Below, in pieces: positions 1 to 47,897 of a stretch of DNA of 64,000 bases (its first letter is position 1; every line of letters starts with the position of its first letter). The DNA lies in the NCBI RefSeq assembly GCF_023055435.1, contig NW_025964112.1:8804001-8868000 (forward strand), written 5' to 3'. The DNA comes from Haliotis rufescens (lineage: Eukaryota). Below the pieces are notes generated by a model. That model worked only from the letters and a program-made list of their open reading frames with translations, was not told where the DNA came from and made no database searches. The position numbers and the translations under genes were made by a program.

Positions 1-1075
1 CAACTGGCCTTTCATTTTCAAGGTCTTATGTGAATACCTTTCCATTTTCATAAATCAGTTTATCAAATCTAAGCTTACATTTCTCACCAAGTGCCTTTGA
101 ATCATCCATTATTGTTTTTAACATTTTATGCTTATTTCTAACGTTTAATGAATAGTCTTCCGAAATACTGTATGAAGTACCTTTGAGTCGTTTAGCATTT
201 CTAAGGATAGACTATTTCGTACCATAGTCTCTAAATTTGATATTGAGAGATTTACTGTTATTCAATCTATGACAACGTTCAATTGCCATATCTGAATCAC
301 CCATTTCCAGATTGTCCTTAATGATGTTACGTACTATATCTTCACAATCTGTCTATGTCTCTGATTGTTTCTCTTTCACAACACCGTTGAATAGCAGATT
401 ATTTCTACGGCTTTGGTTTTCTATATAGTCCAGTTTGTCTGTGACTGAAGACAGTGTTGTGTTGATTTTAGGGTACCGTTTTCTTCCTCGAGTTTGTTAC
501 ATCTCACAGACAGGGCGTTAACGTTGCTAGTAAGAGAGTTAATCGACTTTGGCAGATACATTCTTTATCTCGGATAGAAGCTTTTCAAAGTCTGAAGTTT
601 CACATTCCTGACCCGATGTCAACTTGAGCTGTTTCGTGTTGGTTGTACTGTTACGGGTTTCAGGTCCTGGGTTAGGTTCGACGCCAGAACGCAGCAGTAA
701 CATCGATATGATACTCAACACTTTATATGAAGACGAAACATATCTCGAGCTGTACTTATTGTAGCTTTTGATAAATCTGCAGGGTGTTGAGGTAGTAATC
801 CTGATGCTCTCTGGACCAGATGATACGACGGATCCGGAACAGAGAGAAAATTTTGGCAGAAGTGTATCCTACATTCGTGACATGTAAACAAGGTCGAGGT
901 ATCCGTTTTGGGGAATGGATATGGGGTCTGGTGATGTGGTTCTGTGTGGAATGGGAACGAGTCGACAAGTGATAGTATTGCGGTTGAAAGTGTTGTTGAT
1001 ATGACCCATAATGAAGTGAGTAACACCGTCGTGAGCGTCACTCGGTAAGCCAGGTCAAAAATGGCGTCCACTTTG
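1..1075 (-). mobile_element. Same LINE, ORF1 and 5' region (copy 1)
   Basis: Near-identical to 15561-16616. SGVEPNPGP at 662-688. YY1-like AAAATGGCG at ~1057-1066 near the element's 5' end. Confidence 0.8.
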
Positions 1076-1139
1076 ATAAACACAATAAGCCACAAAAAGT
1101 TAGGGGTATTTTATAGTCATTAGTAATGACAGATTCAGC

Positions 1140-1400
1140 AGATTCGATAGAATTTGTATTTCTTTGTAGTGTGTCCGTAAACCCTGCCATTGAAATACCA
1201 AACGTTCTCGATCAGGGGATGGGTCTTGAGACGATTAATTAGAATAGCCTTTGCTTTAGTGTCGTCATCTTCAAGGCCTATTGATATGTTTTCTTTTAAC
1301 TGTTTCCTTGCTTTAAGGAGTCGTGCAATTCCGACAGTACAGTCGTCAATGAAGTTTGCATTTGGGGAAGTGAAATTTTGTTGTTTTTGTCATTTGAAAC
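1140..1400 (-). mobile_element. Fragment of a second LINE ORF1 C-terminus (copy 1 only)
   Basis: Minus-strand translation RLLKARKQLKENISIGLEDDDTKAKAILINRLKTHPLIENVWYFNGRVYG resembles ORF1 C-terminal regions. Confidence 0.5.
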
Positions 1401-1499
1401 TTTTTCGGAACATGCGTTTAGTGTACATTGAATTGCAAAGTCGGAGAAGTTTCATATATATACTTCACGGAATGCACGAGCTAACCTTTGTTGATCATT

Positions 1500-1800
1500 G
1501 ATATACCTGAAGCTTAAGTTAAATTCCTAGGAGAAATCCCGACGCATATGCATTAAGAAACATATCCGCAAAAAGTAGGGCACAATTGGTGCCCATGGTG
1601 ATGCTTACTTCTTGCCCAAACTGTCTTACCCCCTAACTTTACATAGATTTCATCAATGATGATGTCCACCTTTTCACATATTGTTTTCTCAGGAAACTTC
1701 AGATGACATTTGCTGTCATTTTTGACAAATTGTGCTGACCTCGAAAGATAGATGTACTATTCTATCAATGGTCACCATGTTTTGTAACAAAACCCCTATG
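1500..1800 (-). mobile_element. Penelope-like reverse transcriptase remnant (also ~16710-16990)
   Basis: Translation ITMGTNCALLFADMFLNAY matches the GIPMGTNCAPLLADLFL RT motif; frameshifted. Confidence 0.65.
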
Positions 1801-2150
1801 GATCAAGGAATGAAGTTTTCCTAAGTTTTGACAGAATTGAACTTGATTCTTATCTAAGATTGTAAAAAGTCAAGCAAATCCTTTGAGTTTCAGAAAATCC
1901 ACATTATTTATTCCACTTTCCCCTTCCTTATTGTATTAAGTATAATGGTTAATCTTCAAGACATGTATTTGGTGGTACATTTGGTGTACCCAGAGATATA
2001 TCTATCTTTGTACAGAAACAAAAGTTTCTAGTTCAACGTACTGTCTTGCACAATACCTTTTATCTATTTTGATAGTATGTCATTGTATTCAGGCAGATGT
2101 TACAGGCGACACGGATTCCACGCGGGTGTGTGTATCAAGCCCTGTATATG

Positions 2151-2182
2151 TATATATATGCAGGGAAACGTGTATGTTCATT
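2151..2182 (+). promoter_or_regulatory. Putative TATA + initiator core promoter of A1 (A2 equivalent ~17358-17388)
   Basis: TATATATAT at 2151-2159, TTCATT with A at 2180 (~29 nt spacing), ATG 19 nt further on. Confidence 0.45.
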
Positions 2183-2198
2183 AAAAGCGTTGGCAACC

Positions 2199-5100
2199 AT
2201 GAGGCTCTTGTTCCTGTTCGTGTTACTGCTGTTTTCGGTGGTTTCCGGTAAGTTTATTTACGTCTCTGCCTTTTGAATTGTAAAATGGTTAAATGGGATA
2301 TTCACTCCATAAACTGGAACGACGTGGTGTCATCAAGTATCATTAATCTGTTGTTACTATTCGCTAGATACTGGGTCCTGGGGGTGCTTGGAGAGCCTAT
2401 AGGATTTTGATTCTGCTGAAATAATGGATCATGCAAACACGAACACTATGATTTATGAGTGAAGTTGTAACATATATTTCTCATCTAATTTGGGGCGGTG
2501 GAGTAGCCTGGTGGTAAAAGCGTTCGCTCGTCACGCCGAAGACCCGGGTCTGATTCATCACATGGGTACAATATGTGAAGCCCATTTCTGGTGTCCCTCG
2601 CCATGATATTGCTGGAATATTGCTAAAAGCGGCGTAAAATCAAACGTACTCACTCACTCATCTTATTCGTGTTATGGCGACTGAAACTCGAACCCTACCA
2701 ATTTCTTGCGTAACCCGGCACACCCTGTACCATCGCAAAACCTGATACAAATTTGCAAATCTCTCGAGCACTAATATATCTGTTATTTCCTGTGAAAGCT
2801 AAATTTTAAATGCGAGGATGTTGATTTAGCAATTAGCGAGAACAAATTAAAAGAACTCATTGAATAATTTTCCAGGGAAGAATGGAACCTCAGATGTGAT
2901 CGATTTCTCCCAACTAGTAAACTGCAGCGATCTACAATCTATGTTGTTAATTGAACAAAAGTGTCTTGAAGAATACGGCGTCACCTTCAAAATTCCATCC
3001 TTAAGCGAAATCAACAACTCGTCCGGAGCTGCATTATTGTCTTCGATAACCCCAGGTTATTTAGATGACATGTGTAGGTTAGTATGAACAATTCCTTTAA
3101 TAACACTTTAATAACATCAACAATCATACTTCATGCTACTATTAATGATGATTGCGGCATTGGAATAGCGAAAAACAAGATCAAATGATAATGATAATTG
3201 AAATACTACCATTATGATTTTAGTGCAGTGACTGATGTTTTACGCCGCAGTCAAGGATGCCCAAGTATCAATGTATGAAGTCGAATATTGACCGGGCAAT
3301 CCGGTGACTGGCGTTTTTGATGCATGTCATCGAATCCCAATTGCTCATGCTGTAAATCAGCTTGATGGTTTAGGCTCGATTATTTATAGACTGCCACCCT
3401 AAAGCTGGAATATTGCAAATCTCAATAAAATTAGACATCCTAATAGGTTCATGTCAGAACGACATTTCATCCCATCAATCAGTTAACCAGATCGGGAAAG
3501 TGACAGTTGGAAAGTGTTTTCTGATCATGCAAACTCGAAATGGTTTATACGAGGTATTCCGAACGACAGTAAAGGGCTGTACGACTGATTCCATAAAAAG
3601 ATCGTCTTCGTCTCGCTTTAAAGGATAATAAACATTTGAAAGTGACTTTAACAGAAGAAAATTGACTATAGCCCGTAGGAAGTACTTGACAATTAATGGG
3701 ATGACCTGAGAGCTCTGTTTAGCAGTTGGTATATTGCTAAGTGTGGTGCTAAACAACAAACAAAGAAACAAAGTAGTATTTGACATTAACCCTGCTTGAA
3801 CAACAGTATGGTTGTGTTTGGGCTATGTTTCTGCAATTGCGTATTTTTTTGATTATATGATACAGAGTATATGATACATTCAACCTTTTTATAACATTGT
3901 TGCAAAATAAACGAAATGATTCTCGTTCACGTTGTCCATGTAATAACATTGTCATTTGACGAAACGTTCAGGAATCTTGACGGTTATGGGAAGGCCGCTG
4001 ATTGTGTTGGTAACATAAACAGGAAGTGTTTAAAACAGACCGATACGTCTCCGACGGCAGACAAGATAAAGAAGTGGCAAGAATATGCCTGCGCCAACAA
4101 GGACAGTGAGTATAGCGTAATTGTTAACCACTGACAAAGGAATTGGACACAATTGTCACCGGATCCTATCCGTTATGTCAGTAATAGACCATAGTAAACG
4201 CCAGAGAATAAACAGTCTTGATTATCTGCTCAAACAGATTCAATTGGTCTTAAATCACCTCTGATAATGTGACATGTATCAGTGTTACGAAGTTTCCAAC
4301 ATGAAACGCAAAGCTAATCCTAGAAATGGGTTTGTACAAGCTAAAATTGTGAAATAAGTAAATGACCAAACATGATTAATGTATTTTATTCAAAAATACA
4401 GTTTAATGTTTACAATCAAAACAGGCAGTACAATGGTCAAACAAATGGCAATAGCAATAAGTATCAGGCCTCACAATATATTTCCGAGCACTCACGAATG
4501 TCCAGAAAATTTCAGTCGAATGTCGTTAAACAATGCTGCCTCTATTTTAGAATTCAAGCTGGTTTTGGAATTCGGTAATTTTCAGATAGGTATCCCGTCT
4601 GTACTTGATAGGTAGATAAAATGCAAGACAAGTTGTAAAAGACCTCGAATCGCACTCTTGTCGCTCTTATATAGGTACAACCACCCTTTTAGAAACTGTC
4701 CAATCCTGAAACTTCTCGAATGCTCAAGACTGTCATGTTTGTCAACAACCAAAGGGGTAACTCTATGTCTTTGAAAGGCATTTAGATGTGATACACATAA
4801 GGAAAAGAATGTATGGATATCAACTTCTTTATTATTTATATATATATATATATATATATATGTACATGTAAGGACAACACAATTAAAGTCCAAAAACAAC
4901 TTGGAAAATGAAACTGTTGGTGGTTCATGAAATGTGTAATATTCTGGAATTTTTAGGGAAATATATGTTTGTCTAAGAATGTTACTCAAATTTAAAGAGT
5001 CAATTCCCTTTTATGATATGAGGGATGACTTCAACCTTTCAATAGTCACCTTTTGTTGAGCAATATTCCAGCAGCTCCAGATTTTGGTGTCTACATTTCA

Positions 5101-8100
5101 CAACTTGAGTTGTACAATCGAGCATGCTCTTTCCTTCAAAGAACGTTATGCGACCCTTGTGCAAAATTGTTTGATCAAGGTTACAACATTCAAGGCCACA
5201 TTAAAGCTTTCCAAAGCCGTCCTCTTTCCTTTCTGGTTACCATAAAAAAAAATTCTATTGTAAGCTGAGTAGATGTAAAGTTGGATTGAATTCAGGATTA
5301 GTTATCAAAACAGGATATGTTTTGAAATTTTTGAACCACGTAAGATGTGTTCGAAAGAAAAATGCTTGTCTGAAATATATTGTTTATTGATAAACCTCGA
5401 TAACTCGACCTTCATAAACTGAATAAATTGTTCAAGGGGATGTACAAGTCCCTTTGGCTCTGTGATATCAAATCACTCGAAACTACAACCAGCTCTATAT
5501 ATTTTGATTTACTCCAGTACTTCGAGAAATGAGGTTTCTCGGTGCACTAATTCATTTTATTGATGTCAATTTCCACCTTAGATGTTAAGAAACTTGCTAT
5601 CTTTTTTAACTTTACCCTAGGCATCCGTAAGAACTTATACCAGTACATAAATAAAACAGTACTGTTTTTATAATCCCCGGCTATCTAGTTGTTTAACTAT
5701 TAAGTACGTCATTGTTCCTCAAGAGCTCAACATGACCTGCATGGTCGAAGTGACGTCTAAAATGGGGGACTGTGCCGATGTCAGCAGTTACATAACCACC
5801 AATGATTACCTTCACCTCAACTTTACTGAGTTGATGCACAAGATAGATTGTTTGTGAGTAACTTGTCGTCAAATACTAGTATCCTTCTTTAAAATGATAC
5901 AACCCGTGTGCGTGAGTGCGTGTATTTATCTCATGACCACCATTCTTAGTTTTTATGGAAGTTCACAGGCAGGAAAACATTTGTGTAACTCACATCAGGC
6001 CTGATTAAAAGATTATTAGATTCTTGCTATCCTTTTTACCCCAATAGTCGTACATGGTATCATAGAAAGGCTGATTGATATCCATGAACAGGTTCTTCCG
6101 ATATTTACTTTTCCCCAAAACTACAAAACATCGAATCTTTGACATTCCATCATTAGCAACTAGAAGATATCAACCTCATTAAGTCTTTACATGAAATACA
6201 TTACATTACAATACCAAATCCGTTGAAAGTTAATTTGATGTGCCTTGTACATGAAACAGAGCTATAACCCCTCACAATCTAATCAAAATCTTAATTATAT
6301 TAAAGGTTGATTTCATTTGAATTATCTATGTCAGGTCAGCACAGATGTCGTCGCTATGTGCCCGAAAGTACATACCAGCCTGTGGCGAGGCCGCACTCCA
6401 TATGTATGAAGCAAACGTGCCAAACAACACAGACTGCTCGTCATTTGCTACAGGTTCGTCACAACAGGACTGACAGACATCCTCACACACATATGATCAG
6501 TAAAACAGCAGATGGATTAAGGAGATGTAGTTGTGTGCAAAGGCTATTAATGAACATTATATTAACTCTGTTGTGTGTTGAGTAAAGTTGTAAATAATTA
6601 AATATAGTTACTAGTATATACGATCTATAGCCCAAACGTTAAACTGTACCTGTCATACTCTTAGGGATGCTGGCGACGGAACATTATATATTCAACCTTT
6701 CTCAAAACCTAACTGTCATATCATTTTGGTGTTATTTGACTGTAAAATATTCTTATTCATTTATTGTTGCAAGAGCTTTAGATCGATGCTCATGATGTCA
6801 ATCGATGGATTATCTGTTCGAGAATCGATTATTTACAGGCCGCCATCGTATAGCTGGAATATTCTGAGTGCGGCGTTAAACAACAATCAACAAACAGACA
6901 GACAAACAAGCAATTTCTGGTATTTGCCATGTGCATACATATTTTCTGGTCGTTTCATCGAGTAGGTTTGGGAATCATTTATAAACAAGCCTTCCTGTAA
7001 ATACATGTACCATGGCATATTCCTGCGACTTGATATTAATTCATTCACTTCCGTCAGGCCCAGACATCGCCAGCGTGGACTGTTCCACCACTGAAAACAT
7101 CCGAAGCAGCTACCATCAATGCTTATTGTACAACAGTGTATTGCTAGATGTCCCGAAGCAACTAACAAGTGAAGGCACTAGCCATTACATTATGAACGCT
7201 ATGGCAATGAGTGAAAGCAAGACGATGTGCAGGTATATGTAATTTTAAGAAATCGCTTACTACCACCTCGAACTCCTCTAGTTACAAGTGTCTGTGTTCA
7301 ATATTAATATAAAACATCAAAGCCCCCAAAACCAGTCTCGAGTATCCATTGGACCAAAAGGCAAGATAGCAGTTGATGGATCACGGAAAATCAGACATCG
7401 CGGGTAAGCGATTGATCAATATTAACAGTATTACAAATTTAGACATGAGATATGTGAGAAAAGTAAAGTTCTTTTTACAAATGTGCAATCTCAACCAGGA
7501 TGACAGCGGTATTTTGACCGTTATATCTGAGGTTGCGCTGCTTCTCTGGCGTCTGTTATCTATCGCCGTCTTCGACATTATCAATAAACATTTTCTTGAT
7601 GTTGCTTCAATTGTCGCATGGTTATCCATCCGTAAAGAAGCGGGATTTCATATGCGTACAGAAAATAGCGCTTCTTCCCGAGGCAAGAGAGTTAACTGAC
7701 TATAAAAGTACAGTTTCCAGTCCAGCCAGTTAACTCTCTTGAATCGGGAAGATGAAAATAGCGCGGCATAGATCTTAAAGTCTCCAAAATATATTTCTCC
7801 ATTTTCAGGGTTCCTTTTTAAATTACTTATATAGAAAAACATATATCTTTATCTTTTATCAACCAGTAACATTATTTGTCAATTGTATGTAATTACAAAG
7901 CTTTAAGCATTGTATTATTCGAATGTACATCTAATTCATGCTTCGGAAATACTTATTTTGAGAACTTTTAAAATCATTTTGCTTCCATTTACTATCTTCC
8001 GAATTTTCTTATGTAGAACTGATGCAAGCATTTTAGAAATTTTAAAAATGTATTACCAAACAAGCAGGTGAGCTACGTTTTAATGAGACGATACTGATAC

Positions 8101-11012
8101 TATTGAACATTTTTACACCAGGCACAGTTGACCGATATGAAATGGTTTTCAAAAAGGGCACTTTAAAGGGAACGTGAACCTATTTCAGAAGCAAGTATCC
8201 CAGCATGAATTATAGAATGACTAAATAGTACGTGTTACATATACAGAATATACATAAACATACAGCGTGCTTCATAAGTTACGTTCTATGTCGTACAGTA
8301 ATCTGAAGAACTACCAGCTGACAGTGAACTGTGTGTAACATACACAGAATATACATAAACATACAGCGTGCTTCATAAGTTACGTTCTATATCATACAGT
8401 AATCTGAAGAACTACCAGCTGGCAGTGAACTGTGTGTAACATACACAGAATATACATAAACATACAGCGTGCTTCATAAGTTACGTTCTATATCATACAG
8501 TAATCTGAAGAACTACCAGCTGGCAGTGAACTGTGTGTGACATACACAGAATATACATAAACATACAGCGTGCTTCATAAGTTACGTTCTATATCATACA
8601 GTAATCTGAAAAACTACCAGCTGGCAGTGAACTGTGTGTAACATACACAGAATATACATAAACATACAGCGTGCTTCATAAGTTACGTTCTATATCATAC
8701 AGTAATCTGAAGAACTACCAGCTTACAGTGAACTGTGTGTAACATACACAGAATATACATAAACATACAGCGTGCTTCATAAGTTACGTTCTATATCATA
8801 CAGTAATCTGAAGAACTACCAGCTTACAGTGAACTGTGTGTAACATACACAGAATATACATAAACATACAGCGTGCTTCATAAGTTACGTTCTATATCAT
8901 ACAGTAATCTGAAGAACTACCAGCTGGCAGTGAACTGTACTCTGTGGGTACAGGAGCAGTGCAGTGACCACGTGACAAAGCCGATGGTGGCCGACTCCAA
9001 GACAGTGCAGGACGGCTTGGCTAAACTCTGCGGCCACATCCAGGGTAAGATATACGTCAAAATGTCCATCCGTTATTTATACGTGTATGTCTTTGTTGAG
9101 ACTCGAGACGCACACAACATTCAAGTTCCATAATTATACGTGTGTAGAGGTTGGCATTTTAATTTTTTTTTAAACCCGGTGAGATTTGAAAGTCATTTTT
9201 AAAGTATACAGTGCATGGATACAATATATTTATTTTATTTCAAACTAGTATATACTAATTTAAATCCGGGATATAGAGTCATACATGTCTTCGATTTTTA
9301 GACGTGTTGAAGGTGGAATTTTTAAAACGGCGATATTTAAATTTAAAAAGGAAGAACTATGTATAATTTAGAAAAGGCATTCTTTTTTATTTAATTCAAA
9401 GTTGTATGGTATTTTTATTTAAGAATGATATAGTGAATCTTTCTTATAATTGTCTGTTCCTAGATTTCGACACTCAGTGCGTACAGAATGCACCTAAAGC
9501 AGTTTGCGGCAGTGGCCATGGACTCCAAGCTTTGGATTCAACTAGCCCAAGACACCTTTGCGCGTAAGTAAATTTCATCAGAGATCTTTCGGTTCAAAGA
9601 CACCATGACGGTCTGAAGAATGCTTAGTACCTTATTAAATATTTCTATGTTAGATCAATGGTGTATTCACGTGGATAATTGGTAAAGAAGTTGCATGCAT
9701 GTATTGAGCTGCAAACAATATAGCAGGCTCTACCGTGTTTACAACCCACGGTGTCACTGGTAGTCCAAAAGGATATCACAGTATGACTGAACGCAACTTT
9801 AATCAGGCTGAACTCAGTAATATTCCATCTAGATGCATTAACCGGGGACCTATCAATAGTCGTGGTCAGTCAGACCAGTGGTTGATAGCATGAATAAAAA
9901 TCCACGCCTGGATTGCATGATGACGCACAATCACTCAGGTGACACACTGTAACCACCAGATGTTCATTAAGTTTCTGACACCCATAGTATATATTGTAGC
10001 AAAACAAATAAAAGCGACAAAACCCTATGTATAACCAAACGAATTCTCTATTCAAAGTAATGACAATTGTGATATGGTTATGAATAACTAGTGATGATGA
10101 CAGTTGTTCCCGATGTGATCGTATTTGTTTCACCAATGTCACCCGTCACAAACACGTGCAATGGAAAGTCAATGGTTGAGCTGAATTTGTTTCGGAAATG
10201 TGTTCCACAAGTCTATCAAACACATTTTAAAAGCTTTACTAAGGTTTCAATGTTGCAACCCCGATGGAACAACTTATGTGCATGAGTCGTATGAAGATTT
10301 ATTGAATCTTCGAACGAAAGCGTTAGACCAGCTTTTGTGAAACGTGTACTAAGGTTAAAACAAGGCGTGTGTTCCCTTTCCGCGAAAACCTTGTGTCATC
10401 TCTCTATCAATGGTTGAGCTGAATTGCTTTGGAAATGTCTTCCACAAGTCTATCATAAACATTTTAAAAGCTTTACATAGGCCTTGAATGTTGTTACCCT
10501 AATGTGCAGGAGTATGAACCTTTATTCAATCTTCAAACGAAGGAGATGGACCGGCTTCTGTAAAACGTGTACTAACGGTAAAACAGGACATGTGTTCCCT
10601 TTACGCGGAGACCTTTTGTTCCCTTTACGCGGACACCTTGTGTCATCTCTGACTCAGTATGATAATTTCAAATAAGTTTCACTTTTTGCCTTTTGCGCTT
10701 TATGGAATATGTCCGTAATCCAGACTGGTTATTACCTGGTATTAACGTTTTCTTATTCACCATGCTTTAAATAAGTGTCAAGAGTTTTCAGATTCCTTGC
10801 GCCTTTTTTATATATGATATTTCTACTCAGGATTGTACATGGTAACTCTGGAAGTGTTTTTGCTTGTTTTCAGTGCCACTAGTGCCACCCGGAAGTGTCT
10901 GGTGTCGGCAGTGAGTGGCTGCAGCAAGACGACTGTCAGCATGTACGAAGACCTCCTGCGTAGCCAATCCCCGTCTATGTGTCTGACCGCTGGGTCAGTC
11001 GTAATTGGCTGA
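2199..11012 (+). CDS. Gene A1: secreted Cys-rich protein, 395 aa, signal peptide + two 12-Cys domains (uncharacterised family)
   Basis: Nine phase-consistent GT-AG exons: 2199-2247, 2876-3077, 3972-4105, 5724-5853, 6335-6453, 7058-7232, 8905-9044, 9464-9563, 10874-11012 (1188 nt, no internal stop). Starts MRLLFLFVLLLFSVVSG (signal peptide), ends ...SPSMCLTAGSVVIG*. Exons 2-9 each have 3 Cys; several N-x-S/T sequons. Frame is preserved in the A2 copy. ATTAAA at 11053-11058. Confidence 0.85.
2491..2660 (+). mobile_element. tRNA-derived SINE with (ACTC)n tail (copies ~17689-17857, 38497-38572, 45325-45408, 51292-51450 -, 51467-51585, 62070-62200 -)
   Basis: A-box TAGCCTGGTGG, degenerate B-box, body GATATTGCTGGAATATTGCTAAAAGCGGCGTAAAA, ACTC tail; dispersed copies. 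Confidence 0.85.
5005..5230 (+). mobile_element. Penelope-like RT C-terminal remnant (related pieces at ~10000-10650 -, ~47900-48290 +, ~58425-58865 +)
   Basis: YDMRDDFNLSIV...SNIPAAPDFGVYISQLELYNRACS resembles the YDKRDDF...SNIP..PAYGVYISQL.RY.RACS motif. Confidence 0.65.
8233..8938 (+). repeat. 101-bp tandem repeat, 7 units, spanning the intron 6 / exon 7 boundary of A1
   Basis: Acceptor ACAG|TAATCTG recurs with exon starts at 8299, 8400, 8501, 8602, 8703, 8804, 8905. Confidence 0.95.
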
Positions 11013-11709
11013 TGTAGATTGTCAGTTACAGCTTCACGTAGCTTAAACGGAGATTAAATATGTTCCAATATCTACATCGAAGTTGTTTTAAGTTTTGTTA
11101 TTCCTGTATTTTCCTGGTTTGTCCAGGTATTTTGCAATGCTAACCTATGTTATTGACAGTGTATTTAGAAGTGTAATATTTTTCATACATGACCTTCTGA
11201 GGATAAAAATCAGGAAAGTACCCGAGAGTTATATATTATAAATAATTATTGGCTGTCGTTTGATTTAGGATAACCACAGAACAAGAATTCAGTCTCTGAT
11301 CGGGTTCTGTGCTAGCTGATAACACAAACAAATATTAATATGAGGGTTGTAAATAAAGCGACAGAACCCTTTCCATATCCAATATAAATCTCTGTATAAA
11401 GCAAAGTCGATTATACAATTCCGATTATATCATGAGCATGTGTTTATAAATCACTATAAAATAGTAATCACACCAGGTTCCGCGAAAAGGTGAGCATATC
11501 CTGCCCCACCGGGGGCACCCGTCACAAACACATGCAAAGGCAACTCAATTTGTAAGTTCGATCTGAATGTATTATGACGTCACAGCTCGAAAATGCCGTG
11601 AAAGCCCCTTGACACGTTGTCAAATTTGTATGTGTTGAGTTTGTAACGTATTTTAAGAAACTAAAAGAAAATAGTACAAAAGAAAGTCCACATTCAGATT
11701 GTTCGGGTT

Positions 11710-13804
11710 TCACCCCTGAAATACTCCAACTCTCGAATATATAAGTGCGAGTACTGTCATTAACATTGAAGCCACACGTTTGCCAGCCCGGCTCTTGGGG
11801 ACGGGTGTGGTCGTCCTTCCCCCCTGCACACAGGGGGCGGGGACCTGGGATGACAGCAGGTGCGTGTACAGTTCAGCAGTGCTTGGACCACAGGATTCCA
11901 CAGAGGCTTTCATGCAGTCGGTGATGGTTTGGATGATACTGTTGGGTACAAAAAAAGTAAATTAGGTTCATACACTTTCAACACCTTACTCCATGTTCCA
12001 ATCTCGGGTCCCCGTGAAGATCCGTGTTAGAATTTGGGCTTTTCGTAAGACTATCGGGATCTGGTTGTTAGGCTCGCTGACTTGGTTGTCGCATGCCATC
12101 GTATCCTAATTGCGTAAATCGATTCTCATGATGTCAATCACTGGCTTGTCAATGTCGTGATGTTAAAGGGGATTGTACGTACATCAGAAATATACATATT
12201 TATGTTACTCCAAAATCAGCTGTAACTCAATGTACATTCTCTTGCCAAATACCCCGAGTTCTGTCTGATTGTTGACAACTTTTGGTATATCACTTGCCAG
12301 GGGATAAATCCAAGAACAGGTATTACGGCAGCTCGGTGGTTTACGACGACACACTATAGCTGCCAGAATCCGGTCGTTGTGTGTTCGAATCCCGGGTTTG
12401 AAAGCATTAGGACCGGGACACTGAGCACTGTTACACATTCATATTCAAGTTATAGAGTCTGGCCACCCTTTAGGACAATGGTGGACCAATCTTACAATGG
12501 AATCCCCACGGGTCTGTTTTATCGAAGCACTAACAGTACATTATTTACCATATTCACATAACTACAAAGCAGTAAGGAAACGTAAAACTTAAAATTGTTA
12601 TCCATAGAGTTGTTCGTTTACTTCTTACACACCAACCTCTAGAATGCCAATCAAACAGCTACAAAGCAGCACATGTTTTAATAATGCAATGGTCAGACAT
12701 ATCCTCAATCAACATTTTATCTATCTACCTGCATATTTGCTCGGGCGTGCTGGAATTAACCATCCATTTCTCACAGGTGCTCTGGTCGGCGTTCATCACA
12801 CAACCGGAGGCAAATTCTAGAAAAACAACATACGATAAACTCTAACTGGATGTCCAAATCTATGTCACTATTGTTCAATCAATTTTAAAGGTATTTTACG
12901 TTGATTGAAATTTTTTTTTCTTAAAGAAATACACAAACTAAAATCTGAACAACTAATAACTGAGCTACTATATGAAAAGTGCTACTGCGCTGTAGCTCAC
13001 CTGGATATGTAATTTATAATGCCAACAAAGACAGCCACAAAAATTAATATTTAAATATTTTCTGCTTAAATTCTAAACTCTGCATAAATACTGATTAAAA
13101 CAAAAGGTCAACGCCAGAGAATAACCAGTGTCGAATATCTAGCGAAGCATATCTAAATCTTCATGCCAAAGCAATGAACATTTGTGTTTTAGCGTTTGTA
13201 TTACACCTACTATCAAAATCCTTGTGTTCGCAAAATGAGGTCATTCCGAGAGTGGTAGAATGGGGGTCAGCAAACAGGTGTCGCTTGGACGGACTGCACT
13301 GTGTCAGGACAGCAAGGGTACAGCTGACAGCGTTATGGTAGGCCGACATGTTGCTGAGAAGGCAAATAAACAATGTTACATGAACAGAATCGGTAGGTAG
13401 AAACTATAAAATTGTCATAAGAAAGAAACCAGAAACCATGAAAAGCACCCCGTAGTGCAAGCATGCAATACCAGTTGCATTAAATGCTTTCAACCCCTAT
13501 TATATAAAAGATATATAAAAATCGGATTAAGAAAATGTCGTTCATTACGAACCCACTGTGTTCTTCGAGTATTATGTTATATTTTCAACATGACAATGTG
13601 ACTTTTACCTGCACATGTCTCTATGTCGGGACACTGTGAGACCTTTCAGTATGTAATCCGTTGTTTCTTCTGGTGATGACAACTGAGGCACTTCAAGGTA
13701 AAAACCTTGGTACAATAAGCAGTTAAGAGCTCCGTCCTGTATCCCTTTAGTCGTTGAACAGTCCACGCGGTGCGTATGTCTATTTGAGAGTTCAACTGTT
13801 GTAT
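11710..13804 (-). pseudogene. Gene B1: 5'-truncated duplicate of B2 (last four exons only)
   Basis: Exons 13804-13609, 13353-13211, 12816-12729, 11938-11710 match the last four B2 exons with intact frame. The exon equivalent to 29423-29308 is not present in 14200-14720, and homology to B2 ends at the junction near 14870, so no signal peptide or start is visible. Confidence 0.65.
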
Positions 13805-14870
13805 CTGTGGTCATAGGTCGCAAGGAATAATTATTCAAATGATTACAAATGTAACCTTCACAAATATCGACAAAACGCCGCGATTTTGCTTCATCTATCC
13901 CGAGAAGGGGGTGCCTAAGTGTCCTATCCCTAAATATCACTATGATGTTTTACATAAGGCAGTTTATGCATTTCATATTGTTTTCTCTGTAAACCTCAGA
14001 TTTCTTTTGATTTCATTTGTGAAACGGCTCATAATTGTTTGAAAGACTCATGAATGATGCAGATTATTTGTGACGCACAAAAGGAAAAGAACATGCATGT
14101 CTAGACATTATCTTGACTTTACCACAAAATGTTGAAATCGTACGCGCTGATTGTGTAACATTTCTTGAACTCTCTTATCAAAGTGGTCCAACACCTTTGC
14201 ACAACTTCCAGGAGCGATGAGATATTTCGATGATAACGAAAAAACAGTCCGTACTTATCTTTGTTTTCGTGTGTATGTAGTTAATTACATATGCCTATCT
14301 TGTGAATTGCGGGGTGTTGTTTCAGACTACGACACATCACGCTGCCGGTAATTCTTACTTCACGATAAGTGATAAGGAAACAGAGCACACACGCAAAGAT
14401 TACCATCTGTCAGTTCTAACAGTTCTACTCGCAACCTCGTCAGTGCTGCAAGGTTAAGCATTTGGTTTTCGAACATCCAACATTTACTTTATATTCCGTA
14501 TTTTAATACTGGACCTAAGTTCGGAACCAACAGGTACATTATGTAAGGAACACATAAGTAAAATACTAATGATACAATGTGCAATCAGTAGAAACAATAT
14601 GACAATTGTAACCTCACCTTCCTTTCGCAAAGAGAAATGCTGGTTCCACAGCCCCGTTTGATTATATGCTTTCAACGAATGATGTCTTGCTCTTTCCACG
14701 CAGCTTTGGACAGTGTTTTATGCCATATCACATAAATTTGTGAGGAAAGCACAAAGTGATGCAGATCCTAGACGTTTACTATTTCTGTAAAACCGGATAT
14801 AGTTTTGAGACAATCAGATACAGAACACAGCTCTTGATCAGGAGATTCTTGGATTCGAACCCATGATCCA

Positions 14871-16616
14871 TTTCATTTAATGTTAAGATATATGTTTCAC
14901 TCTCATCATCGTCAGATATAATAAAATCTTGCAAAATACCAGTTCTTGCATTTAAATCTCCTGCATGTATAATAGAAAGATCTTCAAATTTACAAAGTTT
15001 CTTAAGTAAACATTGCTCAAGATAATCAATACCTCTAACATCATGGATATCAGTCTTTGTTGGCGTAGTTTCAGGATGTACGTAAGAAAACAAAAGTAAA
15101 GTATCACGTGGTAAACCAAAAAATACGTGATCAAGTATTATAAATATACAGTCGGTACAAGTTAAATCAACATGTTTAACGCCTTTAAACAGTTCATATT
15201 TGACGAAAAGAGCGACACCACCTCTGGTATTGTATTCACGAAAGTTTATCATAATATTGTGATTGGGGAAGCTTTTTTTCATATCTTCTTCAGAACAGTT
15301 GCTCCAAATACCTGTTAAACAAAACAATTCAAATAAAGAGCAAAACCCAACGAAGGATTTGTCCTGCAACTTGCGATTCAAACCGTTAACGTTCCATGAC
15401 ATGAACGAAAAGTTTCTTCATTTACCGTTACAATCCACGGCCCGGCCGAGATCCCAGCTGTAAGCGCTACGCGCGGGTCCGCCCCCACCATGACCTCCAC
15501 GTGAACGAAACGCGGGACGGCCGCGGCCGCGACCTGCTCTGAATACCGTTCTTTCAATCTCAACTGGCCTTTCATTTTCAAAGTCTTATGTGAATACCTT
15601 TCCATTTTCATAAATCAGTTTATCAAATCTAAGCTTACATTTCTCACCAAGTGCCTTTGAATCATCCATTATTGTTTTTAACATTTTATGCTTATTTCTA
15701 ACGTTTTATGAATAGTCTTCCGAAATACTGTATGAAGTACCTTAGAGTCGTTTAGCATTTCTAAGGATAGACTATTTCGTACCATAGTCTCTTAATTTGA
15801 TATTGAGAGATTTACTGTTATTCAATCTATGACAACGTTCAATTGCCATATCTGAATCACCCATTTCCAGATTGTCCTTAATGATGTTACGTACTATATC
15901 TTCACAATCTGTCCATGTCTCTGATTGTTTCTCTTTCACAACACCGTGGAATAGCAGATTATTTTTACGGCTTTGGTTTTCTATATAGTCCAGTTTGTCT
16001 GTGACTGAAGACAGTGTTGTGTTGATTTTAGGGTACCGTTTTCTTCCTCGAGTTTGTTACATCTCACAGACAGGGCGTTAACGTTGCCTGTAAGAGAGTT
16101 AATCGACTTTGGCAGATACATTCTTTATCTCGGATAGAAGCTTTTCAAAGTCTGAAGTTTCACATTCCTGACCCGATGTCAACTTGAGCTGTTTCGTGTT
16201 GGTTGTACTGTTACGGGTTTCAGGTCCTGGGTTAGGTTCGACGCCAGAACGCAGCAGTAAACCGATATGATACTCAACACTTTATATGAAGTCGAAACAT
16301 CATCTCGAGCTGTACTTATTGTAGCTTTTGATAAATCTGCAGGGTGTTGAGGTAGTAATCCTGATGCTCTCTGGACCAGATGATACGACGTATCCGGAAC
16401 AGAGAGAAAATTTTGGCAGAAGTGTATCCTAAATTCGTGACATGTAAACAATGTCGAGGTATCCGTTTTGGGGAATGGATATGGGGTCTGCTGATGTGGT
16501 TCTGTGTGGAATGGGAACGAGTCGGCAAGTGATAGTATTGCGGTTGAAAGTGTTGTTGATATGACCCATAATGAAGTGAGTAACACCGTCGTGAGCGTCA
16601 CTCGGTAAGCCAGGTC
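14871..16616 (-). mobile_element. Degenerate LINE (CR1/L2-like): ORF1 + APE endonuclease start of ORF2, 3'-truncated
   Basis: ORF 14779-15402 has APE motifs SWNVNGL, GGVALFVK, AGDLNARTG. Upstream are L1/CR1-type ORF1 motifs (SRKNNLLF, AIERCHRL, ISEDYS) and LRSGVEPNPGP, with frameshifts. Confidence 0.85.
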
Positions 16617-17403
16617 TGTAAATGGCATTTGAAACTTTTTCGGAACATGCGTTTAGTGTACATTGAATTGCAAAGTCGGAGAAAATTCATATATAATTCG
16701 TTGATCATTGATATACCTGAAGCTAAAGTTAAATTCGGAGGAGAAATTCCGATTCATGTGCGTAAAGAAACAAATCCGCAAGAAGGGGGGCACAATCGGT
16801 GCCCGTGGAGATGCCTACTTCTTGCCTAAAATGTCTTACCCCCACATTTTACATAGATTTCATCAATGATGATGTCCACCTTTTCACATATTGTTTTCTC
16901 AGTAAACTTCAGATGACATTTGCTGTCATTTTTGACAAATTGTGCTGACCTCAAAGATAGATATGCAATTCTATCAATGGTCACCATGTTTTGTAACAAA
17001 ACCCCTATGGATCAAGGAATGAAGTTTTCCTAAGTTTTGACAGAATTGAACTTGATTCTTATCTGAGATTGTAAAAAGTCAAGCAAATCCTTTGAGTTTT
17101 AGAGAATCCACATTAATAATTCCACTTCCTTATTGTATGAAGGATAATGGTTAATCTTCAAGACAGGAATTTGGTGGTACATTTGCTGTACCCAGAGATA
17201 TATCTCTCTTTGTACAGAAACAAATGTTTCTAGTTCAACGCACACTGTCTTGCACAATACCTTTTATCTATTTTGAGAGTATGCCATGATTGTATTCAGG
17301 CAGATGTTACAGGCGACACGGATTCCCACGTGGGTGTGTATCAAGCCCTGCATATAATATAAGTGCAGGGAAACGTGTATGTTCATTATAAGCGCTGGCA
17401 ACC

Positions 17404-20400
17404 ATGAGGCTCTTGTTCCTGTTCGTGTTCCTGCTGTTTTCGATGGTTTCCGGTAAGTTTATTTACGTCTCTGCCTTTTGAATAGTAAAATGGTTAAATG
17501 GGATATTCACTCCATAAACTGGACGACGTGGTGTCATCCAGTTTTATTAATCTGTTGTTACTATTCGCTAGATACTGGGTCCTTGGGGTGCTTGGAGAGT
17601 CTATAGGATTTTGCTTTTGCTGAAATAATGGATCATGCAAACACGAACACTATGATTTATGATTGTAACATATATTTCTCATCTAATTTGGGGCGGTGGA
17701 GTAGCGTGGTGGTTGAAGCGTTCGCTCGTCACGCCGAAGATCCGGGTCTGATTCATCACATGGGTACGATATGTGAAGCCCATTTCTGGTGTCCCTTGCC
17801 ATGATATTGCTGGAATATTGCTAAAAGCGGCGTAAAACCAAACATACTCACTCACTCATCTTATTCGTGTTATACTGAGAACATCTTTGGTGTTATGGCG
17901 ACTGAAACTCGAACCCTACCATTTTCTTGCGTAACCCGGCACACCCTGTACCATCGCAAAACGTGATACAAATTTGCAAATCTCTCGAGCACTAATATAT
18001 CTGTTTCTGCCTGTGAAAGCTGAATTTTTAATTCGAGGATGTTGATTTTGCAATAAGCGAGAACAAATTAGAAGAACTCATTGAATAATTTTCCAGGGAA
18101 GAATGGAACCTCAGATGTGATCGATTTCTCCCAACTAGTAAACTGCAGCGATCTACAATCTGTGTTTTTAATTGAACAAAAGTGTTTTGAAGAAAACGGC
18201 GTCACCTTCAAACTTCCATCCTTAAGCGAAATCAACAACTCGTCCGGAGCTGCAGTATTTTCTTCGATAACCCCAGGTTATTTAGATGACATGTGTAGGT
18301 TAGTATGAACAATTCCTTTAATAACACTTTAATAACATCAACAATCATACTTCATGCTACTATTAATGATGATTGTGGCATTGGAATAGCGAAAAACAAG
18401 ATCAAATGATAATGATAATTGAAATACTACCATTATGATTTTAGTGCAGTGACTGATGTTTTAAGCCGCAGTCAAGGATGCCCAAGTATCAATGTATGAA
18501 GTCGAATATTGACCGGGCAATCTGGTGACTGGCGTTGTTGATGCATGTCATCGAATCCCAATTGTTCATGCTGTAAATCAGCTTGATGGTTTAGGCTCGA
18601 TTATTTGAAGACTGCCACCCTAAAGCTGGAATATTGCAAATGTCAATAAAATCAGACATCCCAATAGGTTCATGTCAGAACGACCTTTCATCCCATCAAT
18701 CAGTTAACCAGATCGGGAAAGTGACAGTTGGAAAGTGTTTTCTGAACATGCAAATGGTTAATACGAGGTATTCCGAACGACAGTAAAGGGCTGTACGACT
18801 GATTCCATAAAAAGATCGTCTTCGTCTCGCTTTAAAGGATAATAAACATATGAAAATGACTTTAACAGAAGAGAATTGACTATAGCCCGTAGGAAGTACT
18901 TGACAATTAATGGGATGACCTGAGAGCTCTGTTTAGCGGTTGGTATATTGCTAAGTGTGGTGCTAAACAACAAACAAAAACACAGAGTAGTATTTGACAT
19001 TAACCCTGCTCGAACGACAGTATGGTTGTGTATGTTTCTGCAATTGCGCATCTTTTGATAATATGATACAGAATATATGATACATTCAACTTTTTTATAA
19101 CATTGTTGCAAAACATACGAAATGATTCTCGTTCACGTTGTCCATGTAATAACATTGTCATTTGACGAAACGTTGAGGAATCTTGACAGTTATGGGAAGG
19201 CCGCTGTTTGTGTTGGTAACATAAACAGGAAGTGTTTTAAACAGACCGATACGGATACGACGGCAGACACGATAAAGAAGAGCCAAGAATATATCTGCGC
19301 CAACAAGGACAGTGAGTATAGCGTAATTGTTAACCACTGACAAAGGAATTGGACACAATTGTCACCGGAACCCATCCGTTATGTCAGTAATAGACTATAG
19401 TAAACGCCAGAGAATAAACAGTCTTGATTATCAGCTCGAACAGATTCAATTGGTCTTAAATCACCTCTGATAATGTGACATGTATCAGTGTTACGAAGTT
19501 TCCAACATGAAACGCAAAGCTAATCCTAAAAATGGATTTGTACAAGCTAAAATTGTGAAATAAGTAAATGACCAAACATGATTAATGTATTTTATTCAAA
19601 AATACAGTTTTATGTTTACAATCAAAACAGGCAGTACAATGGTCAAACAAATGGCAATAGCAGTAAGTATCAGGCCTCACAATATATTTCCGAGCACTCA
19701 CGAATGTCCAGAAAATTTCAGTCGAATGTCGTTAAACAATGCTGCCTCTATTTTAGAATTCAAAATGATTTTGGAATTCGGTAATTTCAGATAGGTATCC
19801 CGTCTGTACTTGATAGGTAGATAAAATGCAAGACAAGTTGTAAAAGACCTCGAATCGCACTCTTGTCGCTCTTATATAGGTACAACCACCCTTTTAGAAA
19901 CTGTCCAAGCTCAAGCCTTTGGTGTCTACATTTCACAACTTGTTGTACAATCGAGCATGCTCTTTCCTTCAAAGAACGTTATGCGACCCTTTTGCAAACT
20001 TGTTTGATCAAGGTTACAACATTCAAGGCCTCATTAAAGCTTTCCAAAGCCGTCCTCTTTCCTTTCTGGTTACCATAAAAAATTATGTTGTAAGCTGATT
20101 AACTCGTGTCGAAAGTTACTGTTGTATCCCTCCAACATATTTCAAACCATAAAAGGGACATTGAAAGCCACAGATGCGTTTTTAGTTCGAAATGTCAAAT
20201 CTTCAAAACGTTTTGTGCAGGATGTATTAGATGTAAAGTTGGATTGAATTCAGGACTAGTTATCAAAACAGGATATGTTTTGAAATTTTTGAACCATGTA
20301 AGATGTGTTCGAAAGAAAAATGTTCGACATACTTGGCTGAAATATATTGTTTATTGATAAACCTCGATAACTCGACCTTCATAAACTGAATAAATTTTTC

Positions 20401-25324: not shown

Positions 25325-26022
25325 TGTAGATTATCAGTTACAGCTTCACGTAGCTTAAAGGGAGATTAAATATGTTCAAATATCTACATCGAAGTTGTTA
25401 TAAGGTTTGTTATTCCTGTGTTTTTCTGATTTGTCCAGGTATTTTGCAATGTTATCCTATGTTATTGACAGTGTAATTAGAAGTGTAATATTTTTCAAAC
25501 ATGACCTTCTGAGGATAAAAATCAAGAAAATACCCGAGAGTTATATGTTATAAGTAATTATTGGCTGTAGTTTGACTTAAGATAACCACAGAACAAGAAT
25601 TCAGTCTCTGATCGGGTTCTGTGCTAGCTGATAACACAAACAAATATTAATATGAGGTTGGTAAATAAAGCGACAGAACCTTTACCATATCCAATATAAA
25701 TCTCTGCATAAAGCAAAGTCAATTATACAATTCCGATCATATCATGAGTATGTGTTTATGAATCACTATAAAATAGTAATGATACCAGGCGTTCGCGAAA
25801 AGGTGAGCATATCCTGCCCCACCGGGGGCACCCGTCACAAACACATGCAAAGGCAACTCAATTTGTAAGTTCGATCAAAATGTACTATGACGTCACAGCT
25901 CGAAAATGACGTGAAAGCCCCTTGAACCGTTGTCAAATTTGTATGTGTTGAGTTTGTAACGTATTTTAAGAAACTAAAAGAAAATAGAACAAAAGAAAGT
26001 CCACATTCAGGTTGTTCGGGTT

Positions 26023-28250: not shown

Positions 28251-28303
<53 letters not shown>

Positions 28304-47111: not shown

Positions 47112-47897
47112 CTGATCTTTGTCTTACATCATCGTTATAGTTAATAACTGTCACTGATCTGTAAATGTCTTACATCATCGTTATATTTAATAACTGTCAC
47201 TGATCTTTAAATGTCTTACATCATCGTTATAATTAATAACTGTCACTGATCTGTAAATGTCCTATATCATCGTTATAGTTAATAACTGTCACTGATCTGT
47301 AAATGTCTTACATCATCGTTGTAGTTAATAACTGTAATTATATAACTTATCTGTAAATGTCTTACATCATCGTTATAATTAATAACTGTCACTGATCTGT
47401 AAATGTCTTTCATCATCGTTATGGTTAATAACTGTAACTGATCTGTAAATGTCTGACATCATCGTTGTAGTTAATAACTGTCACCGATCTGTAAATGTCT
47501 TACATCATCGTTATATTTAATAACTGTAACTGATCTGTAAATGTCTTACATCATCGTTATAATTAATAACTGTCATCGATCTGTAAATGTCTTTCATCAT
47601 CGTTATGGTTAATAACTGTCACCGATCTGTAAATGTCTAACATCATCGTAAAAGTTATTAACTGTAACTTATCTGTAAATGTCTTTCATCATCGTTATGG
47701 TTTATAACTGTAACTGATATGTAAATGTCTTACATCATCGTTGAAGTTAATAACTGTAACTGATCTGTAAATGTCTTACATCATCGTTGAAGTTAATAAC
47801 TGTCACTGATCTGTAAATGTCTTACATCATCGTTATGGTTAATAACTGTAATTATATAATTTATCTGTAAATGTCTAACATCATCGTTATAGTTAAT
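47112..47897 (+). repeat. 46-bp AT-rich minisatellite, about 17 units
   Basis: Unit TGTCTTACATCATCGTTATAGTTAATAACTGTCACTGATCTGTAAA; period 46 (47121 to 47167). Confidence 0.95.

Follow-up and report, generated by a model that had tools for sequence, protein, structure and literature searches.

Why should one exon of a tandemly duplicated abalone gene be several times more diverged than the introns on either side of it? The question is raised by two gene copies, A1 (LOC124135832) and A2 (LOC124135834), in the window, a stretch of 64,000 nucleotides of the Haliotis rufescens genome. Self-BLAST placed A1 in a tandem unit at 1..15560 and A2 in a second unit at 15561..29577, the latter also by NCBI protein mapping; both genes are on the forward strand. 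The signal peptide of A1 is encoded by exon 1 (2199..2247), recognized in the sequence by an ATG with a hydrophobic core behind it and by tblastx against an old paralog. The N-terminal module (N-module) is formed by exon 2 (2876..3077) with cysteines 1-3, exon 3 (3972..4105) with cysteines 4-6, exon 4 (5724..5853) with cysteines 7-9 and exon 5 (6335..6453) with cysteines 10-12. The C-terminal module (C-module) opens with the conserved exon 6 (7058..7232; cysteines 1-3 of this module, omega 0.34). Exon 7 (8905..9044) also belongs to the C-module and has its acceptor and first 36 nt inside a 101-bp minisatellite (8232-8938), exon 8 (9464..9563) is the internal-repeat homolog of exon 4 in the C-module and differs from A2 in 2 residues, and exon 9 (10874..11012) includes the stop codon. 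Exons 1, 2 and 5 to 9 are supported by the NCBI model. Exon 4, the third exon of its module, has 130 nt, made up of 2 nt of a split codon, 42 codons and another 2 nt, and its borders were confirmed by the NCBI models of both copies; the A1 model (P0020) maps to 5723-5854. The corresponding exons of A2 are located at 17404-17452, 18097-18298, 19178-19311, 20684-20813 (the divergent exon 4), 21291-21409, 22040-22214, 23357-23496, 23911-24010 and 25186-25324. The NCBI protein models of A1 (P0020) and A2 (P0002) have 98-100% identity to the respective exons.

The nine-exon gene encodes a protein of about 390 residues that is predicted to be secreted and N-glycosylated. Behind the signal peptide are two helical modules, homologous to each other and about 185 residues long; each is encoded by four exons and contains 12 cysteines. 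In hhalign the N-terminal half matched the C-terminal half over 154 columns (E=6e-5) with 12 of 12 cysteines aligned. A reading as four domains of six cysteines was dropped, as hhalign yielded alignments only for D1-D3 and for the two halves. Among 14 family proteins from 4 species, 24 cysteine columns are invariant. The array genes correspond to LOC124135832, -34, -35 and -36, and LOC124135887 is a further family member in H. rufescens. Searches and fold predictions were performed with single exons or with full-length database proteins. The exon-6 profile matched the family proteins P0002, P0001 and P0003 at E-values of 1e-21 to 4e-26. A 53-position exon profile yielded no relatives outside Haliotis among 1.84 billion representatives, and a full-length profile run against 5.8 billion sequences behind a word filter recovered Haliotis proteins only. 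By these searches the family is found only in Haliotis, though fast evolution could hide remote relatives. In Pfam, neither six single exons nor three full proteins nor all 14 family members gave a match at E<=10, and a profile search of the PDB sequences returned one chance match (E=0.38). AlphaFold2 predicted an all-helical model for the A2 NCBI protein (pLDDT 65.6) and a model with pLDDT 72.4 for a minus-strand paralog, with values of 80-92 in its module. The best matches of these two models to the PDB in Foldseek and VIA-align were generic helical bundles with Z-scores of 5.2-5.4, below the meaningful level for helical proteins, and Foldseek E-values were 0.3 or higher. A literature search by locus and accession names retrieved no paper on these loci.

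The excess of exon-4 divergence over the surrounding introns is real. Both copies align without gaps and differ at 21 of 130 nt (16.2%), with 20 mismatches in the 42 in-frame codons and one in the 3' split codon. Seventeen of 44 residues are replaced, and the single purely synonymous codon change is AAT/AAC. On realignment, the hand counts of the preliminary description (21 nucleotide differences, 17 replacements, one synonymous codon, two intron sites) were all found to be correct. Its tenfold contrast to the intron holds for the chosen 120 nt on the 3' side, where 2 differences (1.7%) give a ratio of 9.7, but not elsewhere: the ratio is 3.5 against the 130 nt on the 5' side (4.6% divergence), 6.7 against both flanking introns (5274-5723 and 5854-6334; 22 of 912 positions, 2.4%; Fisher P=2e-9) and 3.8 against the entire duplicated unit (4.3%). 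Averaged over all introns of the gene the divergence is 4.2%. In a scan of the unit alignment (12.7 kb), just 0.2% of the 130-nt windows had at least 21 differences. The divergent stretch is bounded by the splice sites, with the first mismatch in codon 1 and the last one 2 nt before the donor. Transitions and transversions occur at 10:11 in exon 4 vs 222:247 in non-coding DNA. Among the four A copies, 27 sites of exon 4 are variable, 20 of them specific to A2.

Positive selection, the cause proposed at first sight, had to be judged separately for exon 4 and for the module. For exon 4 alone it is not established: the Nei-Gojobori method counted Nd=17 and Sd=3, an omega of 1.29 (Fisher P=0.48), and the maximum-likelihood (ML) omega of 1.55 did not differ significantly from 1 (LRT P=0.53). 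It is numerically correct that almost every change is nonsynonymous, but this is no evidence of selection, since 82% of the exon-4 sites are nonsynonymous and 17:3 thus equals the outcome of random mutation, with an expectation of about 16.4:3.6. The nonsynonymous divergence of exon 4 is 0.165 vs 0.024-0.042 in the introns (binomial P=1.4e-6), hence dN is 4 to 7 times the intron rate. For exons 2-5 the excess of Nd over the intron rate has a P of 1.4e-7, whereas Sd is not above it (P=0.73). With codon counts summed exon by exon, the pooled N-module (exons 2-5) reached an omega of 3.07 by NG86 (Fisher P=0.014) and of 3.97 by ML (LRT P=0.0037), in a test on one A1/A2 sequence pair with 49 substitutions and a partition picked after the data had been seen. 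The dS of the N-module, 0.034, is that of the introns. Three codons have two changes each; these are candidate multi-nucleotide mutations, which would inflate omega. The pattern extends beyond exon 4: all 7 nucleotide differences in exon 2 are nonsynonymous, exon 3 has diverged by 8.2% (Nd=11, Sd=0) and exon 5 by 9.2% (Nd=10, Sd=1). Exons 2, 3 and 5 taken without exon 4 have an omega of 8-9 (ML 9.3; P=0.002-0.007), with a single synonymous difference in 95.5 synonymous sites. The C-module has an omega of 0.41-0.47 between A1 and A2, and the contrast between the modules is significant (Fisher P=0.0034). Replacements in exon 4 spare all 10 positions conserved in the family and fall on 17 of the 34 variable positions (hypergeometric P=0.003), and no cysteine is among the 40 changed residues of the N-module. 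The case for diversifying selection is supported by dN above the intron rate, by the omega of the N-module and by the sparing of conserved positions.

A redundant A2 whose N-module decays neutrally, as in an incipient pseudogene, would also accumulate replacements, and the exon-4 omega, which is not different from 1, is consistent with such a relaxed constraint. Of all units that of A2 has diverged most overall, and the exon-3 acceptor of A2 has a C-to-G change at position -3; the NCBI isoform X2 has an acceptor 12 nt further downstream. Neutral decay, however, cannot raise dN above the intron rate (P~1e-6), and the pooled omega is significantly above 1. All nine exons of A2 are open and without frameshift, 24 of 24 cysteines are retained, and the C-module of A2 has an omega of about 0.45. 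In exon 4, both copies have kept 3 of 3 cysteines, both N-x-T sequons, the AG acceptor and the GTGAGT donor, as stated in the preliminary description; this acceptor and donor are common to 5 paralogs. The sparing of the 10 family-conserved positions is evidence against pseudogene decay, in agreement with the first assessment. Finally, the exon-4 changes are spread over both lineages, roughly half of them on the A1-type lineage, which does not fit a decay of A2. We therefore regard relaxed constraint as a poor explanation with little chance of being the right one.

The surroundings of the exon reflect exchange among the copies. The array consists of four tandem units of about 15 kb; A1 and A2 are in the window, and two further units were detected by BLAST against the 50 kb upstream. 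Upstream of the array is an older paralog with the same splice phases, cysteines and sequons, but an exon 4 of only 37-40% identity. The outlier copy switches along the unit, and this mosaic of divergence indicates that unequal exchange and gene conversion homogenise the introns and the C-module. Copy Am1 has a tract of about 1 kb over the introns around exons 2-3 that is 10-12% diverged from every other copy, thus foreign or older tracts do occur in the array. Active conversion and the Am1 tract would be compatible with a conversion of A2 exon 4 by a third paralog of greater divergence, a source that the preliminary description had offered for refutation. When the entire 1.33-Gb assembly was searched with the peptide and the DNA of A2 exon 4, however, no donor of the A2 type was revealed: the matches were confined to A2 itself, the remaining three A copies (82-84% on the nucleotide level) and the old paralog (37% on the amino acid level), to which A2 is no nearer than A1 (40%). 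An exact match of a tract to the exon borders is also unlikely, and exons 3 and 5 have a similar pattern and are separated from exon 4 by conserved introns. Such a tract is the least probable of the explanations considered here and can nearly be dismissed.

Comparisons with other Haliotis species, made on the protein level, bear on the age of the divergence. H. cracherodii has two annotated A copies, each of which differs in exon 4 from A1 in 2-3 of 44 residues and from A2 in 16-17. The exon-4 sequences of A1 and A2 are equidistant (19-23 of 44) from the orthologs of H. asinina and H. rubra, and the paralogs within H. rubra likewise differ most in exon 4 (10 of 44). Since the A1 type is also present in H. 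cracherodii, the episode took place largely before the split of H. rufescens and H. cracherodii. The comparison shows an old episode of paralog diversification and not an ongoing burst in A2, with most changes predating the H. cracherodii split. Derived states are present in exon 4 of the A1 type as well as of the A2 type, and the A2 type is known from A2 alone.

This age gives some weight to a history in which the exon-4 types predate the remainder of the unit, conversion erased the divergence of the introns but not of the exon, and the exon itself evolved almost neutrally (omega about 1). It could have been spared by the chance position of tract ends or by selection against homogenisation. 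The synonymous divergence in exon 4 (3 differences in 22.8 sites, pS 0.131 or 13%) exceeds that of the local introns (2.4%; binomial P of 0.07 against the gene-wide intron rate), which is compatible with a longer history of exon 4; the low exon-4 omega (1.3-1.55) agrees with it. No introns of the gene have diverged less than those adjoining exons 3-5 (2.1-2.7%), conversion has clearly made a mosaic of the array, and at the protein level the A1/A2 split in exon 4 (17 of 44) has about the depth of the split from the H. asinina and H. rubra orthologs and predates the H. cracherodii split. However, the pS value is based on 3 changes only, two of them within doubly changed codons, the limits of the divergence coincide with the splice sites, and an old neutral exon 4 cannot explain the nonsynonymous excess in exons 2, 3 and 5. 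We consider this history unlikely, albeit the strongest competitor of selection; if selection was what blocked the homogenisation, it merges with the preferred explanation.

The A2 unit might also be a haplotype misplaced in tandem, in which case balancing selection between alleles would be concerned, or it might contain consensus errors. Runs of N are present near its 3' end (29121-29304 and 30253-30387), proteins of the A2 type are recorded from this H. rufescens assembly only, and the two annotated copies of H. cracherodii are fewer than the four units of the array. Against this, the A1/A2 junction at 15560/15561 is 94-98% identical to the corresponding junctions upstream, and numerous indels and a minisatellite copy number of 3 against 7 also set A2 apart from the other units. 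Unlike sequencing errors, the changes are clustered, preserve the frame and respect the cysteine framework; a consensus error behind 21 such changes in exon 4 seems implausible. Altogether an assembly artefact or a misplaced allele is very improbable. If A2 was an artefact, or if the family was unexpressed, the finding would have little weight.

Diversifying selection between the paralogs after duplication, acting on the N-module amid array-wide conversion, is probably the correct explanation. Unequal exchange and gene conversion would hold the introns and the C-module alike among the copies, while replacements in the N-module, in exons 2-5 with a peak in exon 4, would have been fixed faster than neutral change. 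Selection would act at the positions that vary in the family, and the framework of Cys, Lys and Asp as well as the sequons would be held. We infer that the N-module may be the surface meeting a fast-changing partner, e.g., a gamete, a microbe or a conspecific cue, and the C-module a conserved scaffold. The 15-kb unit would be a clean natural system to observe gene conversion and diversifying selection side by side.

Abalone are a textbook case for the adaptive evolution of fertilisation proteins, with a short list of genes: lysin, sp18, VERL and ZP proteins. The family described here would add a new, apparently genus-restricted, secreted tandem family with the signature of fertilisation proteins, namely exons that outrun introns and, in one module, an omega of about 3-4. 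The pattern itself is of a kind already known from fertilisation proteins of abalone, from venoms and from immune genes; the family is unnamed and has neither a Pfam entry nor a solved fold. Lysin is a small helical bundle without cysteines, whereas the present family has 24 invariant cysteines in two 12-cysteine modules; its members lack a Pfam match, including the lysin family (E<=10), and a fold match in the PDB. PMC9022041 describes the lysin and sp18 genes as tandem arrays with repeated duplication and positive selection, and the title of Metz, Robles-Sikisaka & Vacquier 1998 (listed in PMC2704960) states a nonsynonymous rate above the intron substitution rate. The genus, the tandem array, the nonsynonymous rate above that of introns, the secretion and the helical structure are common to lysin/sp18 and the present family. 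If the genes are expressed in gametes, mucus or haemocytes, they would be candidates for species recognition or defence, in animals of conservation and aquaculture interest.

Accelerated exons with an omega above 1 are also characteristic of tandem toxin families such as the phospholipase A2 isozymes of crotaline snake venoms and the conopeptides of cone snails. In toxin paralogs, introns and the signal or constant parts are more conserved than the exons for the mature, target-binding part, and the cysteine framework is kept while the residues between the cysteines turn over. The abalone genes resemble them in exons that outrun introns, in the retained cysteine framework and in the omega above 1, here of the N-module. 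In contrast to the toxins, the abalone protein is much larger and has two modules, of which only the N-module is accelerated. As an analogy only, one module that diversifies across tandem copies while another is kept alike, and divergent exon islands in homogenised flanks, recall families of the MHC/immunoglobulin type; the all-alpha fold here is unrelated, and a somatic mechanism is lacking.

A language-model feature search placed P0002 and P0003 nearest to the clusters DUF19, CPG4 and DUF1397, with 170-190 shared features and scores of 0.89-0.91, of which those under about 0.9 are leads only, as 0.9 is also attained by 4-10% of shuffled proteins. DUF19/T20D4.11-like (PF01579), CPG4 (PF15481) and DUF1397 (PF07165, 27-kDa haemolymph protein) are likewise extracellular, cysteine-rich and helical, but known from other phyla (nematodes and arthropods); a search of the 14 family members with the three HMMs gave no match at E<=10. 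Proteins of the DUF19 type contain one or two copies of the domain, each with 12 conserved cysteines, and the abalone modules agree with it in cysteine number (12) and copy number (two). More speculatively, and with a rather small chance of being true, the genes may be a candidate family of abalone recognition proteins for gametes, self/non-self or microbes. Their N-module would be a hypervariable determinant of specificity kept different by selection against concerted evolution, their conserved C-module would have a common job, A2 would represent a distinct type older than the split of the Californian species and surviving only in H. rufescens, and the module would be a mollusc branch of the DUF19/CPG4/DUF1397-like 12-cysteine domains. 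If true, this would provide a first functional handle for these domains.

Between the two tandem copies in the window, A1 (LOC124135832) and A2 (LOC124135834), exon 4 (5724-5853 and 20684-20813) was mismatched in pairwise alignment at 21 of 130 ungapped positions, of which 20 fall in in-frame codons (42 in all) and one in the split codon at the 3' end. Seventeen of the 44 residues were replaced and a single codon was purely synonymous, with no difference in the three cysteines, the two N-x-T sequons or the splice signals (acceptor AG, donor GTGAGT). Re-alignment thus reproduced the counts made by hand in the preliminary description. Its tenfold excess over the flanking intron held only for the downstream 120 nt (1.7 % divergence, 9.7-fold), the most favourable choice of comparator. 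The excess was 3.5-fold over the upstream 130 nt (4.6 %), 6.7-fold over both flanking introns (22 of 912 positions, 2.4 %; Fisher P=2e-9), about 3.9-fold over all introns of the gene (4.2 %) and 3.8-fold over the whole aligned unit (4.3 %); the contrast is real and far above chance. Only 0.2 % of the 130-nt windows along the unit had at least 21 differences. The second most diverged 130-nt segment between the units (1511-1640, 22 differences) is not an exon of the gene, but lies within a degenerate repeat that recurs upstream as an inverted copy; here the outlier is A1. The mutation spectrum of exon 4 was ordinary, with a transition to transversion ratio of 10:11 versus 222:247 in non-coding DNA.

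Self-comparison resolved two tandem units of about 15 kb within the window, at 1-15560 and at 15561-~29577, and BLAST found two more units in the 50 kb upstream, giving four copies: Am2 (LOC124135836), Am1 (LOC124135835), A1 and A2. An assembly artefact or an allele is a very improbable source of the A2 sequence, although this unit is bordered by N runs. The gene model was derived by tblastx of the A1 unit against the older upstream paralog Am3 (LOC124135887), where collinear conserved open segments with splice sites were joined to phase-consistent exons. NCBI proteins mapped onto the window agreed for exons 3-7 and 9, and three boundaries were set by this mapping. The final A1 exons 1 to 9 are 2199-2247, 2876-3077, 3972-4105, 5724-5853, 6335-6453, 7058-7232, 8905-9044, 9464-9563 and 10874-11012. 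Exon 4 of Am3 had only 37-40 % protein identity to that of the A copies; the splice phases, three cysteines and both sequons were common to both, which is strong evidence for a genuine constrained coding exon. The acceptor of A2 exon 3 (19175-19190) has G for C at position -3 (gag versus cag), and the NCBI isoform X2 of A2 uses an in-frame downstream acceptor, skipping 12 nt (4 residues). A 101-bp minisatellite, with 7 copies in A1 (8232-8938) and 3 in A2 (23088-23390), has a repeat unit that includes the exon 7 acceptor, 36 nt from the start of that exon and then a GT; the true exon 7 uses the last copy. At the unit boundary, an open frame on the minus strand (14782-15402) matched Exo_endo_phos (PF03372, E=7e-8); this probable non-LTR retrotransposon endonuclease may have initiated the duplication. 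Downstream of the array are a 35-bp satellite (107 copies, 83 % match, 41147-44833) and a 46-bp minisatellite (16 copies, 47120-47849).

All rate tests were performed on paralog pairs inside one assembly. In exon 4, 82 % of the sites are nonsynonymous, thus a ratio of 17:3 is the neutral expectation; omega was 1.29 (NG86) or 1.55 (ML; LRT P=0.53). The predominance of nonsynonymous changes, earlier read as a footprint of positive or balancing selection on a binding surface, therefore is no evidence of selection. The dN of exon 4 (0.165) exceeded the intron divergence (0.024-0.042, P=1.4e-6). Since decay cannot outrun the neutral rate, neutral decay is insufficient, and we regard relaxed constraint on A2 as improbable. 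The replacements spared all 10 exon-4 positions that are conserved in other family members and fell on 17 of the 34 variable positions. Positive selection became apparent at the level of the N-module (exons 2-5) and not for exon 4 alone. Its 191 codons had 45 nonsynonymous and 4 synonymous differences (pN 0.099, pS 0.034), the pS being indistinguishable from the introns (P=0.73). Omega was 3.07 by NG86 (Fisher P=0.014) and 3.97 by ML (LRT P=0.0037); without exon 4 the signal was even stronger (ML omega 9.3, P=0.002). None of the 12 cysteines was among the 40 changed residues. In contrast, the 180 codons of the C-module (exons 6-9) yielded an omega of 0.41-0.47 (N-module versus C-module, P=0.0034). 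Diversifying selection between the paralogs is probably the main explanation.

Gene conversion has to be considered. The outlier copy shifts along the unit from A1 at 1500-2500 to Am1 at 3000-4000 and A2 at 9000-10000. For exons 7 and 9, together with 20-60 nt of adjoining intron on each side, identity between the A copies and Am3 was 91-92 % (8885-9088 and 10812-10986 against genome positions 8761327-8761530 and 8762208-8762382), versus about 50 % protein identity for the rest of the gene, a pattern suggestive either of very strong constraint or of conversion among old paralogs. Within H. rufescens, exon 7 of A1 and Am3 (5/47) is closer than orthologs between species. Both patterns indicate active conversion, making the exon-limited islands of A2 more striking; they also keep alive an unlikely rival, exon 4 as an older tract with omega near 1 and flanks homogenised by conversion. 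The sole datum in its favour is the pS of 0.13 (3 changes) in exon 4, whereas pS was 0.01 in exons 2, 3 and 5. Conversion from a third paralog would require a donor; whole-genome searches of the 1.33-Gb assembly revealed no further copies of the A1-type or A2-type exon 4, and this origin is hardly credible. In Am1, a tract of about 1 kb that takes in the introns around exons 2-3 (-18000 to -16800 in window coordinates, matching A1 3001-4000) differs by 10-12 % from the three other copies. Unlike the A2 islands, it looks like an older or imported segment; its exon 3 had a pS of 0.22-0.26 and an omega of about 0.5.

Among the four copies, 20 of 27 variable sites in exon 4 were private to A2. Both A copies of H. 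cracherodii have an A1-type exon 4, with 2-3 of 44 residues different from A1 and 16-17 from A2. The orthologs of H. asinina and H. rubra were equally distant to A1 and A2 (19-23/44), and A2 has several states in common with these outgroups. From these distances, replacements occurred on both lineages, those on the A1 side mostly before the split of H. rufescens and H. cracherodii. The divergence between the two paralog types was an early episode, and change has been slow since then. The hot spot recurs independently in H. rubra, whose two A paralogs also differ most in exon 4 (10/44) and exon 3 (8/39).

The 24 cysteines were invariant in an alignment of 14 full-length members from four Haliotis species. 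Profile-profile comparison aligned the N half with the C half over 154 columns (12 of 12 cysteines in register, E=6e-5) and intron phases agree, thus the protein consists of a signal peptide and two homologous 12-cysteine modules, each encoded by four exons. Within the first of these, exon 4 comes third, and its counterpart in the second is exon 8. Sequence searches, including a HMMER profile of exon 6 against 1.84 billion representatives, retrieved no relatives outside Haliotis. This profile matched five proteins, three convincingly, described in a cluster look-up as uncharacterized proteins of H. rufescens, H. cracherodii and H. asinina. No Pfam family matched any member, the PDB sequence search gave no match, and a fold search with the AF2 models nothing above the helical-protein background. 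These models were all-helical (A2 protein pLDDT 65.6, exon-4 region 75-80). In a language-model atlas, the nearest clusters of two members were nematode and arthropod DUF19, CPG4 and DUF1397 (scores 0.89-0.91), a lead rather than a membership. The product would be a secreted glycoprotein with the N-module as partner-contacting, specificity-determining surface and the C-module as conserved scaffold, the paralog types presumably being kept for different specificities. Tandem arrays are mentioned for abalone lysin and sp18 in PMC9022041, and the title of Metz 1998, cited in PMC2704960, names exon-over-intron substitution in abalone fertilisation proteins. The A genes share both features and the genus, hence the analogy suggests gamete recognition; roles in immunity or chemical communication are no less likely. 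The pattern itself is of a known kind, here in an uncharacterised and apparently abalone-specific family. Each unit also contains a further minus-strand gene in convergent orientation, LOC124135886 (256 aa, database protein P0001; 13593-13769, 13293-13355 and 28531-28689), a paralog of the C-terminal module with a hydrophobic GPI-signal-like tail (AF2 module pLDDT 80-92). In its exon-6-like part, 5 of 53 residues vary between the copies. A distant single-copy member lies 2.7 Mb away (NW_025964112.1, 6136661-6136819) and is the ortholog of the H. asinina protein P0003 (427 aa), whose terminal hydrophobic tail is GPI-anchor-like; this member may represent the membrane-tethered state from which the family arose.
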